Positions 2,597-38,686 of a stretch of DNA of 64,000 nucleotides are shown here, in pieces. Under the pieces are notes generated by a model. The model was not told the origin of the DNA. It ran no database searches and was given only the letters and a program-made list of their open reading frames with translations. Location of the stretch: the sequence record NC_061441.1. One strand, given 5' to 3'. The translations under genes and the position numbers were made by a program. Position 1 is the stretch's first letter. Each line of letters begins with the position of its first letter.

Positions 2597-3280
2597 ATGG
2601 CGAAGTTGAAGAAAGAACGATCGGTCAAAGTCAGTGCTAAAAAGACTGTTGCCGTAAAAACAAAGAAAGCAAAAGCTAAGGCTATTCCTGTTCGTGTCGT
2701 TCAGGACACACGGCCTATTATCAATTGCCCTGAGATGGAAGAGAAGCCTCAACCATTTCGTTTTCGTGGTCAGTGCCCGATAGTGACCTGTCAGTATTGC
2801 ACACGCGAAACTCCGACAGGCTGCATGGCGCTTGACCGCAAAGAATCGGCCGACCGTTCAATCTCTAACAAGGAGATCGCTTATTATAAACGTGGCCTCT
2901 TTCCTGAACTTAAAGACATGGATCAGAAGCAACTGGACAGTACGATTCGACGCGCACAAAATCGTACCCGCAATGCTATCTGCCTTACTATGTTTATTGC
3001 CGGGATTGATGATTCTGATTGCGATAGGTCTTTTCAATATGTAGAAGGCCGCAGTCGTCTGGTCGATCAGGTACATAACTATCTGGTCCAAACGTTCAAT
3101 GATTACCGTCCGTGGATGCTCGCATACCTCGACGACGAAAAACGATTCGGCGACATGGTGGGTAAAATAACCAATTCCGACTTTAATTTAAAAGACGCAT
3201 TGCGTTTGACTCCTCGCAAGTATCAAATGTTCTGCCAGTCGCTACAAAATCTTAAACAATCTGGAGACTCTCATGAGTAA
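2597..3280 (+). CDS. Hypothetical protein, Lys-rich N-terminus and Cys cluster
   Basis: ORF track 2591..3280; ATG at 2597; CPIVTCQYC...C possible Zn site. Confidence 0.75.
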   Translation: MAKLKKERSVKVSAKKTVAVKTKKAKAKAIPVRVVQDTRPIINCPEMEEKPQPFRFRGQCPIVTCQYCTRETPTGCMALDRKESADRSISNKEIAYYKRGLFPELKDMDQKQLDSTIRRAQNRTRNAICLTMFIAGIDDSDCDRSFQYVEGRSRLVDQVHNYLVQTFNDYRPWMLAYLDDEKRFGDMVGKITNSDFNLKDALRLTPRKYQMFCQSLQNLKQSGDSHE

Positions 3281-5045
3281 CTTTATCTCCCTCGATCAGT
3301 ATCGCGCGATCATTCGTCGCAACGTCCTGAAAGAGCCTCAGATGCTGGTGGTCAATCAGACGCAGCCACTGGGTCAAATCTTTTTCCAATGCCCCGGCGA
3401 TAACTTCCAGATGAAGGATATCATTGTCCCGCCATCTCGTAACGCTATCGACCTGACGCAGCAAGCACCGCTGGAAAATCTGCTGGCCTGTAGCCAACTG
3501 AAAGCGCTGCTGCAAACGCAACGTCTGGTGTTGTTGAACCCAGAAGAAATGCCAAACCCCGGTGAAGGCATTCAGATGCCTCAGCTTTCTGTTCCACCAG
3601 TTGCTGGTGCCGTGTCGGTTGACGGCGTAACTATTCCTAACGCTACCGTGATTGTCGAGCAAAATGGTAACGTCTGGACTGGTACTTCAAACGGCAGCGG
3701 TGTGTTCACTGTTGACGTATCTGGCCTGCAGGAAGGTGTGTTCTCAATCACCATTACTGCTGATGGTTTCGTGCCTGCTCGTTACAACTTCAATGCTGGT
3801 GCGCAACCTCTGCAACCAATGCCTGCTCCTACAGTACACGCTGTCTTTAAAGAGACAACTGTATCGGGAACCACGGTTGCGAATGCTAATATCATCGTAT
3901 CGGTGCAGAGCAAAGAGTTTACAGGTCAGGCTGATGATCAGGGTGCGTTTAGCATTAACGTTGACCCACTGCCGTTTGACATTATTCACCTGACGATCAC
4001 TGCTGCTGGTTATCTGGATAACGTTGTCAATCACATGGTTGACTCTGTTCCTGGTCTGGCTCAGATTAACAGCGCACCGTTCCTGTCTACTGCGCTGGCA
4101 GGTAAGGCAAGTCCAGAAGCTGAAATCGAAATCATCATCACCGGCCAGTCCAATCAGTTCGTTACTGCTGCTGCAAACGGCGACTGGACTGCTGTTGTTG
4201 GTGCTGTTAAAGGTGAAGTCTCTATTCGTGTGCTTGAGAAAGACGGCTACGACGAAGCGACTGCTACCATGCAGCCTACCAAACTGCCTGCTCCTGTACT
4301 GGCTGTCGATAACGCTGATAGCATCGGCGAGAATCAAACTGTCTTCGGTGGACCTATCACTGGTCTGAGTGCAGAAGCGAATGACGTAGCGGTAACGCTG
4401 ACTGTTCAGGCTGGTCTGTACGAAGGTACTGTTGACCTGCAATCAAGCCACTGGTCTGTGACTGGTGTTGATGCAAAAGCGGGTGTGGGTTCTGTAGGTG
4501 TTGTGAATCTGACGTCGGCCTTCTATGAAGATGCCTCAACGTCGTTCAACATTCTGGAAGAGTTCGCGCAGCCTACTCTGCAACAAGCGCAAGATGGGCA
4601 GACTGCGGTAGTTGGTGATACTGTGGCTAGCGCTACAGTTAAGATCACAATGAACGGCGAAACCAAAACTGCGTCTTCAAACCCGCAGGGTGCGTTCTCT
4701 GTTGATGGATTTACTAACGTTGTGCCTGGCCAGATTCGTATCGAACTGTCACGCAACGGTTACCTGCCTGCGGACTTCAATGTCGCTCTGGCAGTGCAGG
4801 CTCTCGGCCAGCTTGATGCAAATCTGGCTGTCGGTGAAGACACAGTTGCTGGACAAGCGACTCCTGGTTCTACTGTCACCTTGACGCAGGGTAGCGTTGT
4901 TGGTGATGCTGTGGCTGACGCGTCAACGGGTGACTTCATCATCACTCTGTCTGGACCGCTGGTAGAAGGTACACCAGTAGAGTTGAAAGTACAACACGCG
5001 GGCTATGTTGATTACGTTGAAACGTTAACTGTTTCTGCACCTTAA
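3273..5045 (+). CDS. Ig-like/carboxypeptidase-regulatory-like repeat protein, probable virion decoration protein
   Basis: About six ~80-aa beta-rich repeats (V-x-G-x-T...A-T-V...G-x-F...GY) after a ~90-aa N-terminal module. Confidence 0.7.
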   Translation: MSNFISLDQYRAIIRRNVLKEPQMLVVNQTQPLGQIFFQCPGDNFQMKDIIVPPSRNAIDLTQQAPLENLLACSQLKALLQTQRLVLLNPEEMPNPGEGIQMPQLSVPPVAGAVSVDGVTIPNATVIVEQNGNVWTGTSNGSGVFTVDVSGLQEGVFSITITADGFVPARYNFNAGAQPLQPMPAPTVHAVFKETTVSGTTVANANIIVSVQSKEFTGQADDQGAFSINVDPLPFDIIHLTITAAGYLDNVVNHMVDSVPGLAQINSAPFLSTALAGKASPEAEIEIIITGQSNQFVTAAANGDWTAVVGAVKGEVSIRVLEKDGYDEATATMQPTKLPAPVLAVDNADSIGENQTVFGGPITGLSAEANDVAVTLTVQAGLYEGTVDLQSSHWSVTGVDAKAGVGSVGVVNLTSAFYEDASTSFNILEEFAQPTLQQAQDGQTAVVGDTVASATVKITMNGETKTASSNPQGAFSVDGFTNVVPGQIRIELSRNGYLPADFNVALAVQALGQLDANLAVGEDTVAGQATPGSTVTLTQGSVVGDAVADASTGDFIITLSGPLVEGTPVELKVQHAGYVDYVETLTVSAP

Positions 5046-33848: not shown

Positions 33849-34374
33849 ATCACTCGGCGTATACATGACTTACATTCTGCGTCACAAGCCGCAGGATATC
33901 GGAATCGCAATGGACACCCAGGGTTGGGTGTCTGTTCTGGACTTCTTGCAGAAAGCAAAGTATGTCAAACAGGTCACTCTCGAAATGCTGATTGCAGAAG
34001 TTGAGGCGGACGAGAAAGGCCGTTTCGAGTTCAACTCTAACCGCTCCAAGATTCGTTGTGTGCAAGGCCATTCGGTTGAGAACGTTATTCTGCATCTTGA
34101 ACCGTTCACTGACCTTGCGCCTTTGTATCACGGTACGGCAGATAAGAACGTGGCATCAATCATGCACGAAGGTATCACGAAGCGGAAACGCAAACACGTC
34201 CACATCAGCCGTGAAATAGAAACAGCCGAGAACGTTGGTCGTCGTCACGGTGCACCTGTTGTGTTTCAGATTGATACACAGGCAATGATCACTCACGGCT
34301 ATAAGTTCTACCGAGCCGAGAATGGAGTCATCCTGACCGATCACGTACCGTCCAGATATATCAAGTTGGTGTGA
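33841..34374 (+). CDS. kptA: RNA 2'-phosphotransferase (Tpt1/KptA)
   Basis: ILRH, GRF, IRCVQGHS (Arg-His-Arg-Arg tetrad), LYHGT, HVHIS, GRRHG. Confidence 0.92.
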   Translation: MAKSLGVYMTYILRHKPQDIGIAMDTQGWVSVLDFLQKAKYVKQVTLEMLIAEVEADEKGRFEFNSNRSKIRCVQGHSVENVILHLEPFTDLAPLYHGTADKNVASIMHEGITKRKRKHVHISREIETAENVGRRHGAPVVFQIDTQAMITHGYKFYRAENGVILTDHVPSRYIKLV

Positions 34375-34838: not shown

Positions 34839-35180
34839 ATGTATATGAAAAAGTCAAAAGTTAAAGCAGAAGTTGTTGCACCTACTATCGAAGGTCGTTC
34901 ATTCACGTTATATAACGCCTCGCCTGTTCCCGAATTGTCCGTAACACCGTTTGCAGGCCGTGATGCGTTTTTACCTCTACTGCGTAAAGTTCAGGATGCT
35001 GCTCAACTGGAGCGTATTCGTGGTATGTCCTGTTGTCCGTACTGCCGTGAAACAATGATGTTAGGCGAGTACACCAAAGACAACTGGCTGTGGTCATATT
35101 CATATCAGCACATGATCGAACACCACAACGTAACGCCGTCCGCAGAATTTATTGCATACGTCGAAGCCGCTTCTAAATAA
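34839..35180 (+). CDS. Hypothetical protein with CxxC/His cluster
   Basis: RGMSCCPYC...W.W...HMIEHHNV.P..EF. Confidence 0.75.
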   Translation: MYMKKSKVKAEVVAPTIEGRSFTLYNASPVPELSVTPFAGRDAFLPLLRKVQDAAQLERIRGMSCCPYCRETMMLGEYTKDNWLWSYSYQHMIEHHNVTPSAEFIAYVEAASK

Positions 35181-35200: not shown

Positions 35201-36727
35201 ATGAACATGAAAAAGATTAAACACACTTTCCGCCTGACCGATTTGGTACACATCGCAAAACTTCCTGCAGGTATGTCCAAATTCCACGAAGGCTCGGATG
35301 CTATTGTTGTCGGCCGCAACGAAGATAGCGACCAATATATTCTGCACGTTAAAAACGTTGGTGAGCTTTCGTGGTACGAAGGTAAATCACTGACGTTGAT
35401 CAGTCACAACAACGGCGAACTGCTTGACCAGTGGGAAGCAGGTGACTACGGTCGTGATAAGAAAAAGAAACGCAAGATCCCAAAAGAACTGCGTAACTTC
35501 ACGGCTATCTTGCCTGTGACCTGCAACGCCGATTGTTCGTTCTGCCCTGAGAAAGAAATGGAGCAGAAAGCCAACCAGAAAGAATGGCAAGATGGTTTGA
35601 TTGCAGAGATCAAACGCATGTACAAGAAAACGAAGTTCGACCACGTATCAATCAGCGGCGGCGAACCGACGTTGCGTACAAAGTTCCTGTTCGAAACGAT
35701 CGACCGTATTCAGAAAGAAACGCCGATCAAGAAAGTCGGTCTGACTTCTAACGGTCAGTTCCTTGAGAAACCAAACAGTACGTTCGACTTCTTAGACCGT
35801 AACACTACGCCTGAGATGACCAGCAAGCTGTCGCATCTGAATATCAGTATGCACTCGTTCAACCGCGACCTTGCGAACAAGATCATGGGCGTGAACTACA
35901 AACAGACTCTGGAAGATTTAGTTCGCTTCCGCCGTCAGCTCGGCCGTGACGTTAGCTTCCACATTAACTTCGTGATCAATGACCAGACTGGTTCGATTAC
36001 GGAAGAGTTCAAGAGGGCCGCAAACTTCATGCGCGCCAATCCATTTATCGACGTTGTGTTCCGTGTTGATTACAACGACGTTGAACTGTCGAAAGCTCTG
36101 CGTGACTACGCTATGGAATATGAAGCGTGGCAGGAAGCAAGTCGCATCGCTGTGGCTACTCGCAAGAAGTGCAAAGTGAAAGAGCCTCGCGCACCTCACA
36201 TTGTTCAGAAGTTTGATCGCTTCTTCGGCGGCCAGAATCTCGATGACGTTGAAAGCGCTTGGACTACAGGTTGCCCGTCGTGCTTCACTCATGCGTCGAA
36301 CCCTATCAATAACAGCCGCGCATATCTGAAAGCGTCTTCCTACGAACCTAATGAAGACGAAGCGGAGTACACTGAGCTGGTGTATCACATGGACGGTGCT
36401 CTGTATTGGGACTGGACTCGTAATGACCCTGTACCAGCTCCGCGTAGCAAGCGTTTTGACTTCGAGATGAAAGAAGAAGAAGACAAGGCGTGGGAACATG
36501 GTTCTGTGGCCGAAGCGATTAACGCGAATCGCTGTTCATTTGGACCTGCTGCACCGCATCACTGCTCTTACGATTCTACTGGCACAACGGTCGCACCGAA
36601 AGCTGCGAAGAAACCTAAGAAAGTGACACCCGCCAAGAAAACGAAGAAGGTGGGTGGAAAAGTTTCGAGCGTTCCTGGTGCTGCTCCTGGTGTTTGTGGC
36701 TACGGCAATAGTCGTTGTGGCTATTAA
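35201..36727 (+). CDS. Radical SAM protein with N-terminal accessory domain and Cys-aromatic tail
   Basis: CNADCSFC (CxxxCxxC), SISGGEPT, TSNG, NISMH; GCPSC. Confidence 0.88.
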   Translation: MNMKKIKHTFRLTDLVHIAKLPAGMSKFHEGSDAIVVGRNEDSDQYILHVKNVGELSWYEGKSLTLISHNNGELLDQWEAGDYGRDKKKKRKIPKELRNFTAILPVTCNADCSFCPEKEMEQKANQKEWQDGLIAEIKRMYKKTKFDHVSISGGEPTLRTKFLFETIDRIQKETPIKKVGLTSNGQFLEKPNSTFDFLDRNTTPEMTSKLSHLNISMHSFNRDLANKIMGVNYKQTLEDLVRFRRQLGRDVSFHINFVINDQTGSITEEFKRAANFMRANPFIDVVFRVDYNDVELSKALRDYAMEYEAWQEASRIAVATRKKCKVKEPRAPHIVQKFDRFFGGQNLDDVESAWTTGCPSCFTHASNPINNSRAYLKASSYEPNEDEAEYTELVYHMDGALYWDWTRNDPVPAPRSKRFDFEMKEEEDKAWEHGSVAEAINANRCSFGPAAPHHCSYDSTGTTVAPKAAKKPKKVTPAKKTKKVGGKVSSVPGAAPGVCGYGNSRCGY

Positions 36728-36739
36728 GAGGAAAATGAA

Positions 36740-37102
36740 ATGAATGAACGTCGCAACTATTACTATGACAGTCCGTTCTACTACGGACTGATCACTTGGC
36801 GTAAACGCCTATTCATCGTCGTGGCCTTCTTTGTCTTCATCGTGATGTTCCATGCAGACAAGCCGCACGTATCAAACCATCAGTGGGTGTGGACAGCAAT
36901 CATCTTCGGCCTGTTGTTCGCTCTCTGTTATATCAAGCTGCGTGTGTACGAAACGTATTTGCTTGAAGCAATGGGTCCGCTGGACAACAACACCATTATC
37001 GGTAGTTTGTCGTTTGATCGTCTTGAACGCCAGCATGAAGTCTGGTACGAAAAGAAGTTTGGTCACAAGCCACCTAAGACTAACACATGGAGCATCGACT
37101 AA
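36740..37102 (+). CDS. Two-TM membrane protein
   Basis: Two hydrophobic helices. Confidence 0.75.
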   Translation: MNERRNYYYDSPFYYGLITWRKRLFIVVAFFVFIVMFHADKPHVSNHQWVWTAIIFGLLFALCYIKLRVYETYLLEAMGPLDNNTIIGSLSFDRLERQHEVWYEKKFGHKPPKTNTWSID

Positions 37103-37480: not shown

Positions 37481-38053
37481 ATGGAAAAGAAATTCTGCAA
37501 ACTGGCACACATCGGTGCTGACGTGATTATGCCTGCTATCCTGTACGCATTGAACGAAAAGATGCAGGCAGGCGTCAAAGTAGATCTGGCCGAAGCGTAT
37601 ACGTTGTTGAACGATACACAGGCTGTGTATCTTACGCTGGCAAGCGGTCAGCCTGATCGCTATTACGATCAACTCACGCCAACCATTCGAGCGCTTCTGG
37701 AGAAGTATGAAATACAATGGGCCCTCGACCGAGACACGTTGACTAAATACTGTCAATCGTATATGGAGAGCAAAGGCTTCACTCCTGTTGAAGACGGTGT
37801 GTACTCATATCCAGAAGTTGTTGCGTATAACAATTACGACCGCGTGTTCCTACGTTCGTTGATTGGTGTTGCAGACTACAATCTGCTGGAAGCTGCAATC
37901 CAGGAAGAGATGGACGTTGTGTCCGAGATGGACGAGATTGATAAGAAACTCGACCGTGTAGAAGATGGCTGTTGTTCTGAATGCGGCAAAGAACTTGAAC
38001 CCGATATTGAAGGTCCGTTCATGTGCCTAGAATGTGACGATGACGGAGAATAA
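37481..38053 (+). CDS. Hypothetical protein with C-terminal zinc ribbon
   Basis: CSEC...CLEC. Confidence 0.75.
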   Translation: MEKKFCKLAHIGADVIMPAILYALNEKMQAGVKVDLAEAYTLLNDTQAVYLTLASGQPDRYYDQLTPTIRALLEKYEIQWALDRDTLTKYCQSYMESKGFTPVEDGVYSYPEVVAYNNYDRVFLRSLIGVADYNLLEAAIQEEMDVVSEMDEIDKKLDRVEDGCCSECGKELEPDIEGPFMCLECDDDGE

Positions 38054-38055
38054 AA

Positions 38056-38319
38056 ATGGCTGTAGGCTTTGTAAAAGATGATGGCGTTAATGACACCATC
38101 GAAGCTAACCTGAATAACGAGATTGATCGCGCCCGTGCTGAACTGCTAGGCAAAGGCACCACGCACTGCATCAACCCTGACTGTGGCGCAGAGATTCCAC
38201 TGATGCGCCGTGTCGCTATGCCGAATGCTCGTTACTGTGTGGCCTGTCAATCAAGCCACGATGGTTCGGCTGTTAGCCACTACAATCGTCGCGGTTCAAA
38301 AGATTCTCAACTGAGGTAG
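38056..38319 (+). CDS. DksA/TraR C4 zinc-finger protein, YbiI-like
   Basis: G(F)..DD.V..., C..(P)DCG.EIP..RR.A.P....CV.CQ, C-terminus YNRRGSKDSQLR as recalled for E. coli YbiI. Confidence 0.9.
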   Translation: MAVGFVKDDGVNDTIEANLNNEIDRARAELLGKGTTHCINPDCGAEIPLMRRVAMPNARYCVACQSSHDGSAVSHYNRRGSKDSQLR

Positions 38320-38321
38320 TT

Positions 38322-38546
38322 ATGAATATTAAAGCTAACCCTGAAGTGACATACATGCTTGAAGGCTTCTTCCCTGATAGAAACATCTGGGTGATCATTC
38401 ATTCAGATCTTAAAGAAAAGGTTGATATCTCTGAGTTGTTAGATCAGTTGAAGATTGACCCGAAGTGTCCACGTAGTCCTGCCACTGCGTTTCGTATGGT
38501 GCAGGTAACACGCGACGTTGTTCAATTCATGGAGGTTGTTAAATGA
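38322..38546 (+). CDS. Hypothetical protein
   Basis: 74 aa, GAGG RBS. Confidence 0.7.
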   Translation: MNIKANPEVTYMLEGFFPDRNIWVIIHSDLKEKVDISELLDQLKIDPKCPRSPATAFRMVQVTRDVVQFMEVVK

Positions 38547-38686
38547 ATGATGAAGAACGTAAAGAACCATACTCACGCTGTACTGACTGCCGTACGCCTC
38601 TAGCAGAGGATGAAGTGTACGGCGAGTGGGATGACCTGTGCGAGAATTGCTGTGCTGACCGTGAAGATGAAGGGGAGTCTACATAA
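38543..38686 (+). CDS. 47-aa acidic C4 zinc-ribbon protein, absent from the ORF track
   Basis: MNDEERKEPYSRCTDC...LCENC...; ATGA and TAATG overlaps on both sides; GGAGG RBS. Confidence 0.75.
   Translation: MNDEERKEPYSRCTDCRTPLAEDEVYGEWDDLCENCCADREDEGEST

Follow-up and report, generated by a model that had tools for sequence, protein, structure and literature searches.

Introduction

Can a radical S-adenosylmethionine (SAM) enzyme of a phage carry its own peptide substrate at the end of its chain? The question is raised by MPK64_gp277 (hereafter gp277), an open reading frame (ORF) of the Erwinia jumbo phage pEa_SNUABM_16 (Alexandravirus), which occupies positions 35201-36727 (plus strand) of a 64,000-nt stretch of record NC_061441.1 (266.8 kb) and is labelled "hypothetical protein". 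An earlier reading of the bare sequence (the original prediction) had taken its product for a radical SAM enzyme with a repeated Cys-small-aromatic tail, and proposed that this tail is either a built-in precursor peptide, which would make the protein a self-modifying fusion, or part of an unusual auxiliary metal site. The peptide chemistry of radical SAM enzymes contributes greatly to the stock of new cross-links and cofactors, and to our knowledge very little chemistry resembling that of ribosomally synthesised, post-translationally modified peptides (RiPPs) is known from phages.

We found that gp277 belongs to a phage family in which a Cys motif is kept at the very end of the chain and, in some members, is encoded instead by a separate small gene beside the enzyme. 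On these grounds we give roughly even odds (a probability of about 0.5) to gp277 being an enzyme-substrate fusion, with a logic analogous to that of the borosins and the BURP cyclases. Throughout, residue numbers refer to the 508-aa translation of ORF 35201-36727 (the RefSeq start lies at 35207), and positions are those of the whole 64,000-nt stretch, termed the window, where window position equals record position minus 186000.

gp277 is a radical SAM protein with a disordered cysteine tail

gp277 consists of four parts, all encoded on the plus strand: an N-terminal beta domain (residues 1-82, 35201..35446), joined by a short basic linker (residues 83-95, 35447..35485; AlphaFold2 predicted local distance difference test (pLDDT) values <50 at residues 83-87) to a radical SAM core (residues 96-345, 35486..36235), a family-specific beta subdomain bearing a CxxC motif (residues 346-422, 36236..36466) and an 86-residue disordered tail (residues 423-508, 36467..36724; pLDDT <50). 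The core matches the radical SAM Pfam family PF04055 over residues 106-263 with 52.5 bits against a cut-off of 29.5, as well as Fer4_12 (PF13353), and contains both the CX3CX2C cluster motif (C108/C112/C115, 35522-35545) and the GGE motif (G153-G154-E155, 35657-35665), bearing out the assignment of the protein to this superfamily. The AlphaFold2 model, built on a 57-sequence alignment, has a mean pLDDT of 80 and is confident in the core and in the beta-rich C-terminal subdomain. The latter, delimited by the model and the alignment, holds the invariant CxxC (C358 and C361, within GCPSC; 36272-36283) and an invariant D404-W405 pair, which served as the anchor from which tails were counted. Separate Pfam scans of the N-terminal domain, the C-terminal subdomain and the tail gave no match at E up to 10.

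Apart from the cluster cysteines, C324 and the C358/C361 pair, all cysteines of gp277 lie in the tail (C445, C455, C499 and C506), and each begins one of the four anticipated Cys-small-aromatic triplets: CSF, CSY, CGY and CGY, the last of which ends at residue 508, the C-terminus. The first pair (C445-S-F ... C455-S-Y, 36524..36568) is found only in the closest sub-clade (the window and the clusters P0001, P0002 and P0024). It is followed by a Lys/Pro/Ala-rich tether (36569..36691), in whose DNA no tandem repeats were found, and by the terminal pair (C499-G-Y ... C506-G-Y, 36692..36724), which is the element conserved throughout the family. The C112-S-F stretch within the cluster motif forms the same triplet by coincidence and is unrelated to the tail.

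A cysteine motif is kept at the chain end across the family

When gp277 was compared with nucleotide records by tblastn, it matched 47 phage records, all of them Erwinia, Dickeya or Yersinia jumbo phages, and many of the alignments ended near residue 410-430. A protein search returned 64 clusters, mostly on contigs of jumbo-phage scale. Tails were then counted in 65 relatives of 29-100% identity. They extend 45-174 residues past the Asp-Trp anchor, and their linkers cannot be aligned, yet every tail contains at least two cysteines and the end motif is kept. The chain stops 0 or 2 residues past the last Cys in 58 of the 65 relatives; 41 end exactly in Cys-x-aromatic and 17 in Cys itself. Phe, Tyr or Trp stands two residues past 156 of 237 tail cysteines, compared with an aromatic content of 10.5% in the same regions, so that at the family level the pattern is well above chance. 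Most tails have four (26 proteins) or two (24 proteins) cysteines, with spacings peaking at 7-8. In the 57-sequence alignment the only invariant cysteines are 108, 112, 115, 358, 361 and 506; the three cluster cysteines, G153, G154, E155 and C506 are each kept in 57/57 sequences.

More distant proteins belong to the same family. A profile run against 1.84 billion representatives yielded 104 of these at E<1e-30, each standing for a cluster at 50% identity; at E<1e-10 it yielded 497. Among the 109 representatives with a locatable anchor, the core CxxC is present in all and cysteines past the anchor in 98; 88 of these 98 stop 0-2 residues past the last Cys, and in 54 the chain finishes with Cys itself. 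Here the motif reads [GS][GS]-C-G, the spacings are mostly 5-9, the cysteine counts are mostly 2 (49 proteins) or 4 (18), and the linkers of distant members are not basic. The family-wide constant is thus a chain-end Cys, usually a pair, and the aromatic residue at +2 is a speciality of the Erwinia-type clade. The conservation of the tail that the original prediction called for was therefore found in the chain-end cysteines and not in the aromatic residues, which outside the Erwinia/Dickeya/Yersinia clade give way to Cys-Gly. For the same reason, a Cys-to-aromatic cross-link, the chemistry first suggested by the triplets, is not the reaction of the family as a whole. A triceptide register (aromatic-x-x) was rejected on inspection of the tails, as the second residue past the aromatic shows no conservation and the final aromatic is itself the end of the chain.

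The abundance of Cys-Gly raises another reading, namely that the terminal Arg-Cys-Gly-aromatic hosts a glycyl radical generated by the protein's own activase-like core. Gly is the commonest residue after a tail Cys, and the activases NrdG, PflA and YjjW as well as Fer4_12 are among the sub-threshold matches. Of the 220 tail cysteines in the close family that are not the last residue, however, only 109 have Gly at +1 (Ser, Asn, Arg and Asp are found there as well), and many members end in Cys. Moreover, in place of a folded radical domain there is a disordered tail, which the Gly_radical Pfam family did not match at E up to 10. We consider a self-activating glycyl-radical module very improbable.

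Two observations concern individual fused tails. The distant fused members P0046-P0054 have no Lys-rich linker and have in common a short motif containing Leu-Leu-Gly just past the core, which could be a docking or recognition element. In the short-tether member P0154, AlphaFold2 gave the last three blocks of the tail pLDDT values of 88, 67 and 56, an intermediate confidence that suggests some docking in the model.

The cysteine peptide also occurs as a separate small gene

Of 140 newly returned wider-family representatives, 13 stop directly past the anchor and have no tail. We surveyed the tail-less loci for which flanking DNA was available; L008 and L010 were too short to judge, and at L030 no intact enzyme ORF could be read. 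At eight loci a small same-strand ORF adjacent to the enzyme ends in the Cys motif, placed past a basic linker. These partners lie one gene downstream of the enzyme (L007, 79 aa), 3 nt downstream of it (L012, 65 aa), upstream of it (L017, 93 aa) or immediately before it, stopping 12 nt short of the enzyme start (L011); the others are those of L031 (29 aa), L036 (57 aa), L094 (82 aa) and L102 (26 aa). Overall, the split partners measure 26-99 aa and have the motif at their very end, and most of them show, by eye only, an N-terminal stretch resembling an amphipathic helix, followed by the basic linker and the Cys motif. The neighbouring ORFs of L009 and L095 instead bear the motif at their N-terminal end. 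In a more distant tail-less subgroup (L057, L065, L076, L080/L082, L087 and L090), an upstream partner of about 100-185 aa ends in Cys; judged by eye from unaligned sequences, these partners have an N-terminal motif in common. Across tails and partners, the number of Cys units varies from 1 to 10 and their spacing from 4 to 12.

As a control, the strict end motif was sought in all small ORFs of loci L007-L036. It occurred in 8 of 752, six of which are the enzyme's neighbours, and the fused-tail loci within this set contained no extra Cys-motif ORF. NCBIfam models of precursor families matched neither the tails nor the split partners at E up to 10. As a side observation, the L065 partner (3590-3901) gave a sub-threshold match to the NCBIfam model "GCG_CRPN prefix-to-repeats" (E 0.018; 15 bits, cut-off 24).

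A chain-end motif that is kept while its tether is free to change, and that is fused or adjacent to one enzyme family, identifies a dedicated partner of the enzyme. Since other phages encode this motif as a small gene beside the enzyme, the tail of gp277 is most likely a built-in partner or substrate. As far as sequences can tell, the fusion/fission pattern corresponds to that of a maturase and its precursor peptide: a Cys-containing peptide is encoded beside the enzyme or, in most members, fused to it. The same arrangement, in which catalytic domain and core peptide are joined in one chain in some members and split in others, is known from the borosin N-methyltransferases (OphMA type) and the plant BURP cyclases, which carry their own substrate at the C-terminus in fused and split forms (PMC8429565, PMC12186524). 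These enzymes resemble gp277 in having a catalytic domain with a C-terminal peptide, and differ from it entirely in fold and chemistry (SAM methyl transfer in the one case, copper in the other).

A conserved partner need not be a substrate. The tail could instead be a cofactor or catalytic arm, either completing an Fe-S or Zn site together with the core CxxC or serving as a dithiol, sulfur or methyl carrier, while the true substrate is something else, possibly a nucleotide or RNA. Flexible C-terminal shuttle or carrier tails, in which a disordered arm takes its Cys or Cys pair to a buried active site, are well known from ribonucleotide reductase, thioredoxin reductase, MerA and SoxY; a methyl-carrying Cys is known from RlmN. 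By analogy, gp277 may be compared with them, as its disordered arm also has a Cys pair at its very end. The invariance of the core CxxC (57/57 aligned sequences and every anchored representative of the wider family) and the pairing of the cysteines in most tails keep the auxiliary metal site of the original prediction alive. The Lys-rich tethers, the RNA-repair genes near family members in four independent contexts (described below) and the presence, among the closest folds and profiles, of MoaA and viperin, whose substrates are nucleoside triphosphates, are all consistent with such an arm. On the other hand, a peptide of 26-29 aa (L031, L102) is hard to see as a metal ligand or an obligate redox subunit, and we know of no shuttle tail that exists as a separate gene of 26-99 aa. 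Known shuttle tails have a fixed number and spacing of cysteines, whereas those of the gp277 family, a separable module, vary far beyond them. The motif can also stand at the N-terminal end of the partner, and the RNA-repair genes were found in about 4 of 12 contexts. We regard the cofactor arm as less likely than a substrate, but as the main rival to it.

gp277 matches no known radical SAM family at threshold

With NCBIfam, every named match of gp277 among those listed (the best 25 of 45) fell far below its cut-off. The best of these, HxsC, reached 57.9 bits against 267.9, and the partner of HxsC is a His-Xaa-Ser repeat peptide, unlike the Cys-based motif of the gp277 family. The mycofactocin maturase MftC was not among the best 25 of 45 matches, and MftA matched neither tails nor partners at E up to 10. 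When the PDB was searched by sequence and by profile, the matches were limited to viperin-like enzymes, YydG and MoaA, and they covered just the first two-thirds of the barrel, its generic part. The Foldseek matches comprised MoaA, viperin, SuiB, BlsE, SkfB, EpeE and DesII; the TM-scores of the best solved structures (MoaA, viperin and SuiB), normalised on a 276-aa family member, were about 0.5-0.66.

The recurrence of MoaA and viperin in these searches makes it necessary to ask whether gp277 is simply a MoaA-type GTP 3',8-cyclase or a viperin-like nucleotide dehydratase. These enzymes and gp277 have in common a cluster motif of the CN..C.FC type, GGE and TNG-like motifs, and they are its closest solved structures and profiles over the first two-thirds or so of the barrel. 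For the single gp277 protein, MoaA is the best PDB sequence match (E 1.7e-4), the pVip models of PADLOC match at E 1.7e-11, and a homologue from phage Y3 (Y3_274; L093 1507-2850) is annotated "GTP 3',8-cyclase MoaA". However, with scores of 55.7, 53.6 and 47.6 bits, the MoaA models of NCBIfam fell far short of their cut-offs (231, 325 and 284, respectively), as did those of viperin (48.5 against 180 and 25.8 against 450), whose alignments stop near residue 263; NrdG, PflA and YydG scored lower still. With the MoaA models at about 50 bits against 231-325, the label of the Y3 protein is an over-annotation. MoaA binds a C-terminal auxiliary [4Fe-4S] cluster through three conserved cysteines and ends in Gly-Gly, whereas gp277 has a different C-terminal subdomain with only C358 and C361 invariant, and ends in Cys-Gly-Tyr; a Cys tail like that of gp277 is absent from both the MoaA and the viperin families. 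Together with the modest TM-scores, these differences leave very little room for membership of either family, in keeping with the expectation that the enzyme would fall outside the known small-molecule families.

The comparison with RiPP radical SAM maturases (sacti- and ranthipeptide synthases such as SkfB and PapB; SuiB; the epimerase YydG/EpeE; and HxsC of His-Xaa-Ser systems) is closer in layout, as in these too a radical SAM core acts beside a short peptide whose low-complexity end repeats a reactive residue. The gp277 family differs from them in that its peptide is usually fused, it is restricted to phages, and its scores lie far under their cut-offs; it also has neither a SPASM/twitch domain nor a RiPP recognition element (RRE), and the CxxC holds its only extra conserved cysteines. 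The anticipated likeness to known thioether maturases therefore did not hold.

A possible mode of action

In the enzyme-substrate reading, each enzyme of the family would work with a short Cys-ended peptide, supplied either through a fast-evolving tether or by a separate small gene. The chain end with its Cys pair or pairs would enter the radical SAM active site, be it that of its own chain or that of a partner subunit, where the peptide would lose a hydrogen atom to the 5'-deoxyadenosyl radical and then receive a modification centred on Cys. The invariant core CxxC probably helps to hold the peptide thiols or a metal. Our preferred guess for the modification is a thioether-type ring that closes the Cys pair or links Cys to the +2 residue; a change at the C-terminus, or something else, may be made instead. 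We infer the type of modification, action in cis or in trans, and the biological role from the comparisons above, as we do the tail being a substrate and not a cofactor arm.

We favour a substrate because the split forms are small (down to 26 aa) and follow a helix-linker-core layout, and because the number of Cys units is variable (2 to 10). Such variation is also seen in repeat-core precursors, and the best sub-threshold and fold matches include the peptide-modifying enzymes HxsC, YydG/EpeE, SuiB and SkfB.

Several points weigh against this reading. The evidence for the tail as a substrate is wholly comparative, and MoaA and viperin, which are nucleotide enzymes, match equally well below threshold. 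All characterised thioether-forming maturases that we know of carry SPASM/twitch multi-Cys clusters and an RRE. In gp277 no SPASM Pfam match was found at E up to 0.1, and only two core cysteines outside the SAM cluster are invariant; no PqqD-like RRE was found by Pfam in residues 1-95 at E up to 10, in a search that did not compare the five-stranded N-terminal domain directly with the RRE fold. In addition, the AlphaFold2 model of gp277 leaves the low-confidence tail undocked, and cysteine counts of mostly 2 or 4 are compatible with metal ligation or a dithiol shuttle. The partners of L073 and L086, in the more distant tail-less subgroup, have only one terminal Cys, and no partner was seen at the tail-less loci L019, L024 and L096. 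Finally, if the substrate is fused, each molecule would serve for a single turnover, a costly arrangement. The proposed self-modifying fusion thus gained from the chain-end conservation and the split ORFs, whereas a family-wide Cys-aromatic chemistry, a part for the flanking genes (see below) and a likeness to the domains of known maturases were not supported.

Full-text literature searches found no description or functional study of the gp277 family, and no radical SAM enzyme fused to its own substrate. The paper on the Dickeya phage AD1 lists only a "radical SAM superfamily protein", and a comparative review of jumbo phages does not mention the family. We hold it possible, at somewhat less than even odds, that this is the first radical SAM family with a built-in substrate, spread over many phage lineages (jumbo, T4-like and others) and modifying its own or its neighbour's chain-end Cys motif by way of a two-Cys auxiliary site instead of a SPASM domain. 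There is a realistic chance that it represents a new architectural principle for the radical SAM superfamily. The product would then be a phage-made, Cys-derived cross-linked peptide or cofactor, which may serve in taking over the host, or in the modules for RNA repair and counter-defence that are often found nearby. Were the tail a cofactor arm, the family would bring to the superfamily a new kind of tethered Cys cofactor arm. The family is large and self-contained, and is currently annotated as "hypothetical" or, wrongly, as MoaA. With a core of about 250 aa and a peptide of 26-30 aa, it offers a minimal system for the handling of Cys peptides without a SPASM domain; as the fusion/fission pattern names the partner directly, the question can be tested with a single protein.

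Distribution and genomic context

A scan of one genome per species over 185,579 prokaryotic species recovered seven true members only, all on contigs of metagenome-assembled genomes (5-84 kb) and none in an isolate genome. The one bacterial record found at NCBI, from Proteus mirabilis, is a 40-kb contig with phage head-tail joining and helicase genes. The family is thus practically confined to phage contigs.

Within them its surroundings vary and include a head-morphogenesis module, tail sheath genes and nucleotide metabolism. When the ORFs surrounding five distant loci were compared all against all by BLAST, no neighbour gene proved to be conserved. As no other gene is conserved beside the enzyme in distant loci, enzyme and peptide form a self-contained unit.

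Two loci lie among structural genes. On the T4-like JGI contig that carries P0189, a gene for a 74-aa Cys-ended protein and the enzyme gene are found downstream of the portal gene, between those for a prohead protease (Peptidase_S77) and a scaffold protein (T4_CASP), and the pair of L009 (21-3303) immediately precedes the genes for the tail sheath and tube. Such positions, together with the Lys/Arg-rich linkers, would fit a tail that is non-catalytic, i.e., a targeting, packaging or nucleic-acid-binding appendage made of a basic linker and a small Cys knuckle that directs the protein, for example, into the capsid. This would leave unexplained why the motif is constantly paired with one enzyme family across very different genomic modules, and why it stands at the extreme chain end; moreover, the non-basic linkers of distant members do not suit it. 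We consider an appendage of this kind quite improbable.

In the window, gp277 lies in a long series of small same-strand genes without assigned function, and its sole recognisable neighbour, two genes upstream, encodes a Tpt1/KptA RNA 2'-phosphotransferase (33850-34374, plus strand; Pfam E 2.3e-44). In four independent contexts, about 4 of 12, family members have RNA-repair-type genes no more than a few genes away. Tpt1/KptA is encoded in the window and in phage Y3 (L093 495-1040), a T4-type RNA ligase 1 (Rnl1) at L006 (7708-8847), and a polynucleotide-kinase-like protein with a ligase at L017 (4958-5476); at L094, Thg1 and two phosphatases (Metallophos and DSPc) flank the enzyme-peptide pair (580-1955, 3018-3728). 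This association may reflect a functional link or merely a common region of accessory genes, and we treat it as a lead and not as a result.

A Thg1 homologue also lies within about 1-4 kb of the matched radical SAM sequence in eight further loci (L037-L040, L044, L046, L071 and L083). The majority of these loci come from a related radical SAM subgroup of gut phages, whose identity to the tail-less set is 23-26%; in this subgroup we found no tail with a Cys motif and no neighbouring ORF that ends in Cys.

Neighbouring genes and accessory parts

The genes on either side of gp277 had been pointed out in the original prediction. Both are as described: gp276 (34839-35180, plus strand), which precedes the enzyme gene, encodes a small protein with a CxxC and a His cluster, and gp278 (36740-37102, plus strand), which follows it, a 120-aa protein with two hydrophobic segments. 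Neither, however, accompanies the enzyme in distant loci. Homologues of gp276 occur in Ralstonia phage phiRSL1 and in Rhizobium phages, none of which is among the records matched by the enzyme; as these phages are not matched by the radical SAM gene, gp276 represents an independent small zinc-finger-like family. In 46 records, all from one group of Erwinia/Dickeya/Yersinia jumbo phages, gp278 lies downstream of the enzyme; the distant loci do not have it. With synteny limited to closely related jumbo phages, both were rejected as partners of the enzyme. A scan for promoters and terminators around gp277 gave signals no stronger than those of shuffled sequences, and no tRNAs were found within the window.

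The predicted N-terminal beta domain was borne out by a confident five-stranded model (about residues 15-79, with strands over 15-68 and a helix at 72-79; pLDDT 81-94). It is an accessory part, present only in the Erwinia/Dickeya/Yersinia jumbo-phage clade and in one further cluster (P0025), and relatives of 340-400 aa begin without it, at the CX3CX2C motif. That it might exist as a separate upstream gene in the Rivsvirus phage pEa_SNUABM_5 was rejected, as that gene shows no similarity to it. Three matches in BFVD are stand-alone phage proteins of 102-186 aa, one of them from Klebsiella phage Miami; they span only 77-102 model columns and may or may not be this domain.

Further downstream in the window, three plus-strand ORFs (37481-38053, 38056-38319 and 38543-38686) contain paired CxxC motifs and appear zinc-ribbon-like by eye. 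In pEa_SNUABM_5, the gene that directly follows that of the enzyme bears the annotation of a DksA-like zinc finger.

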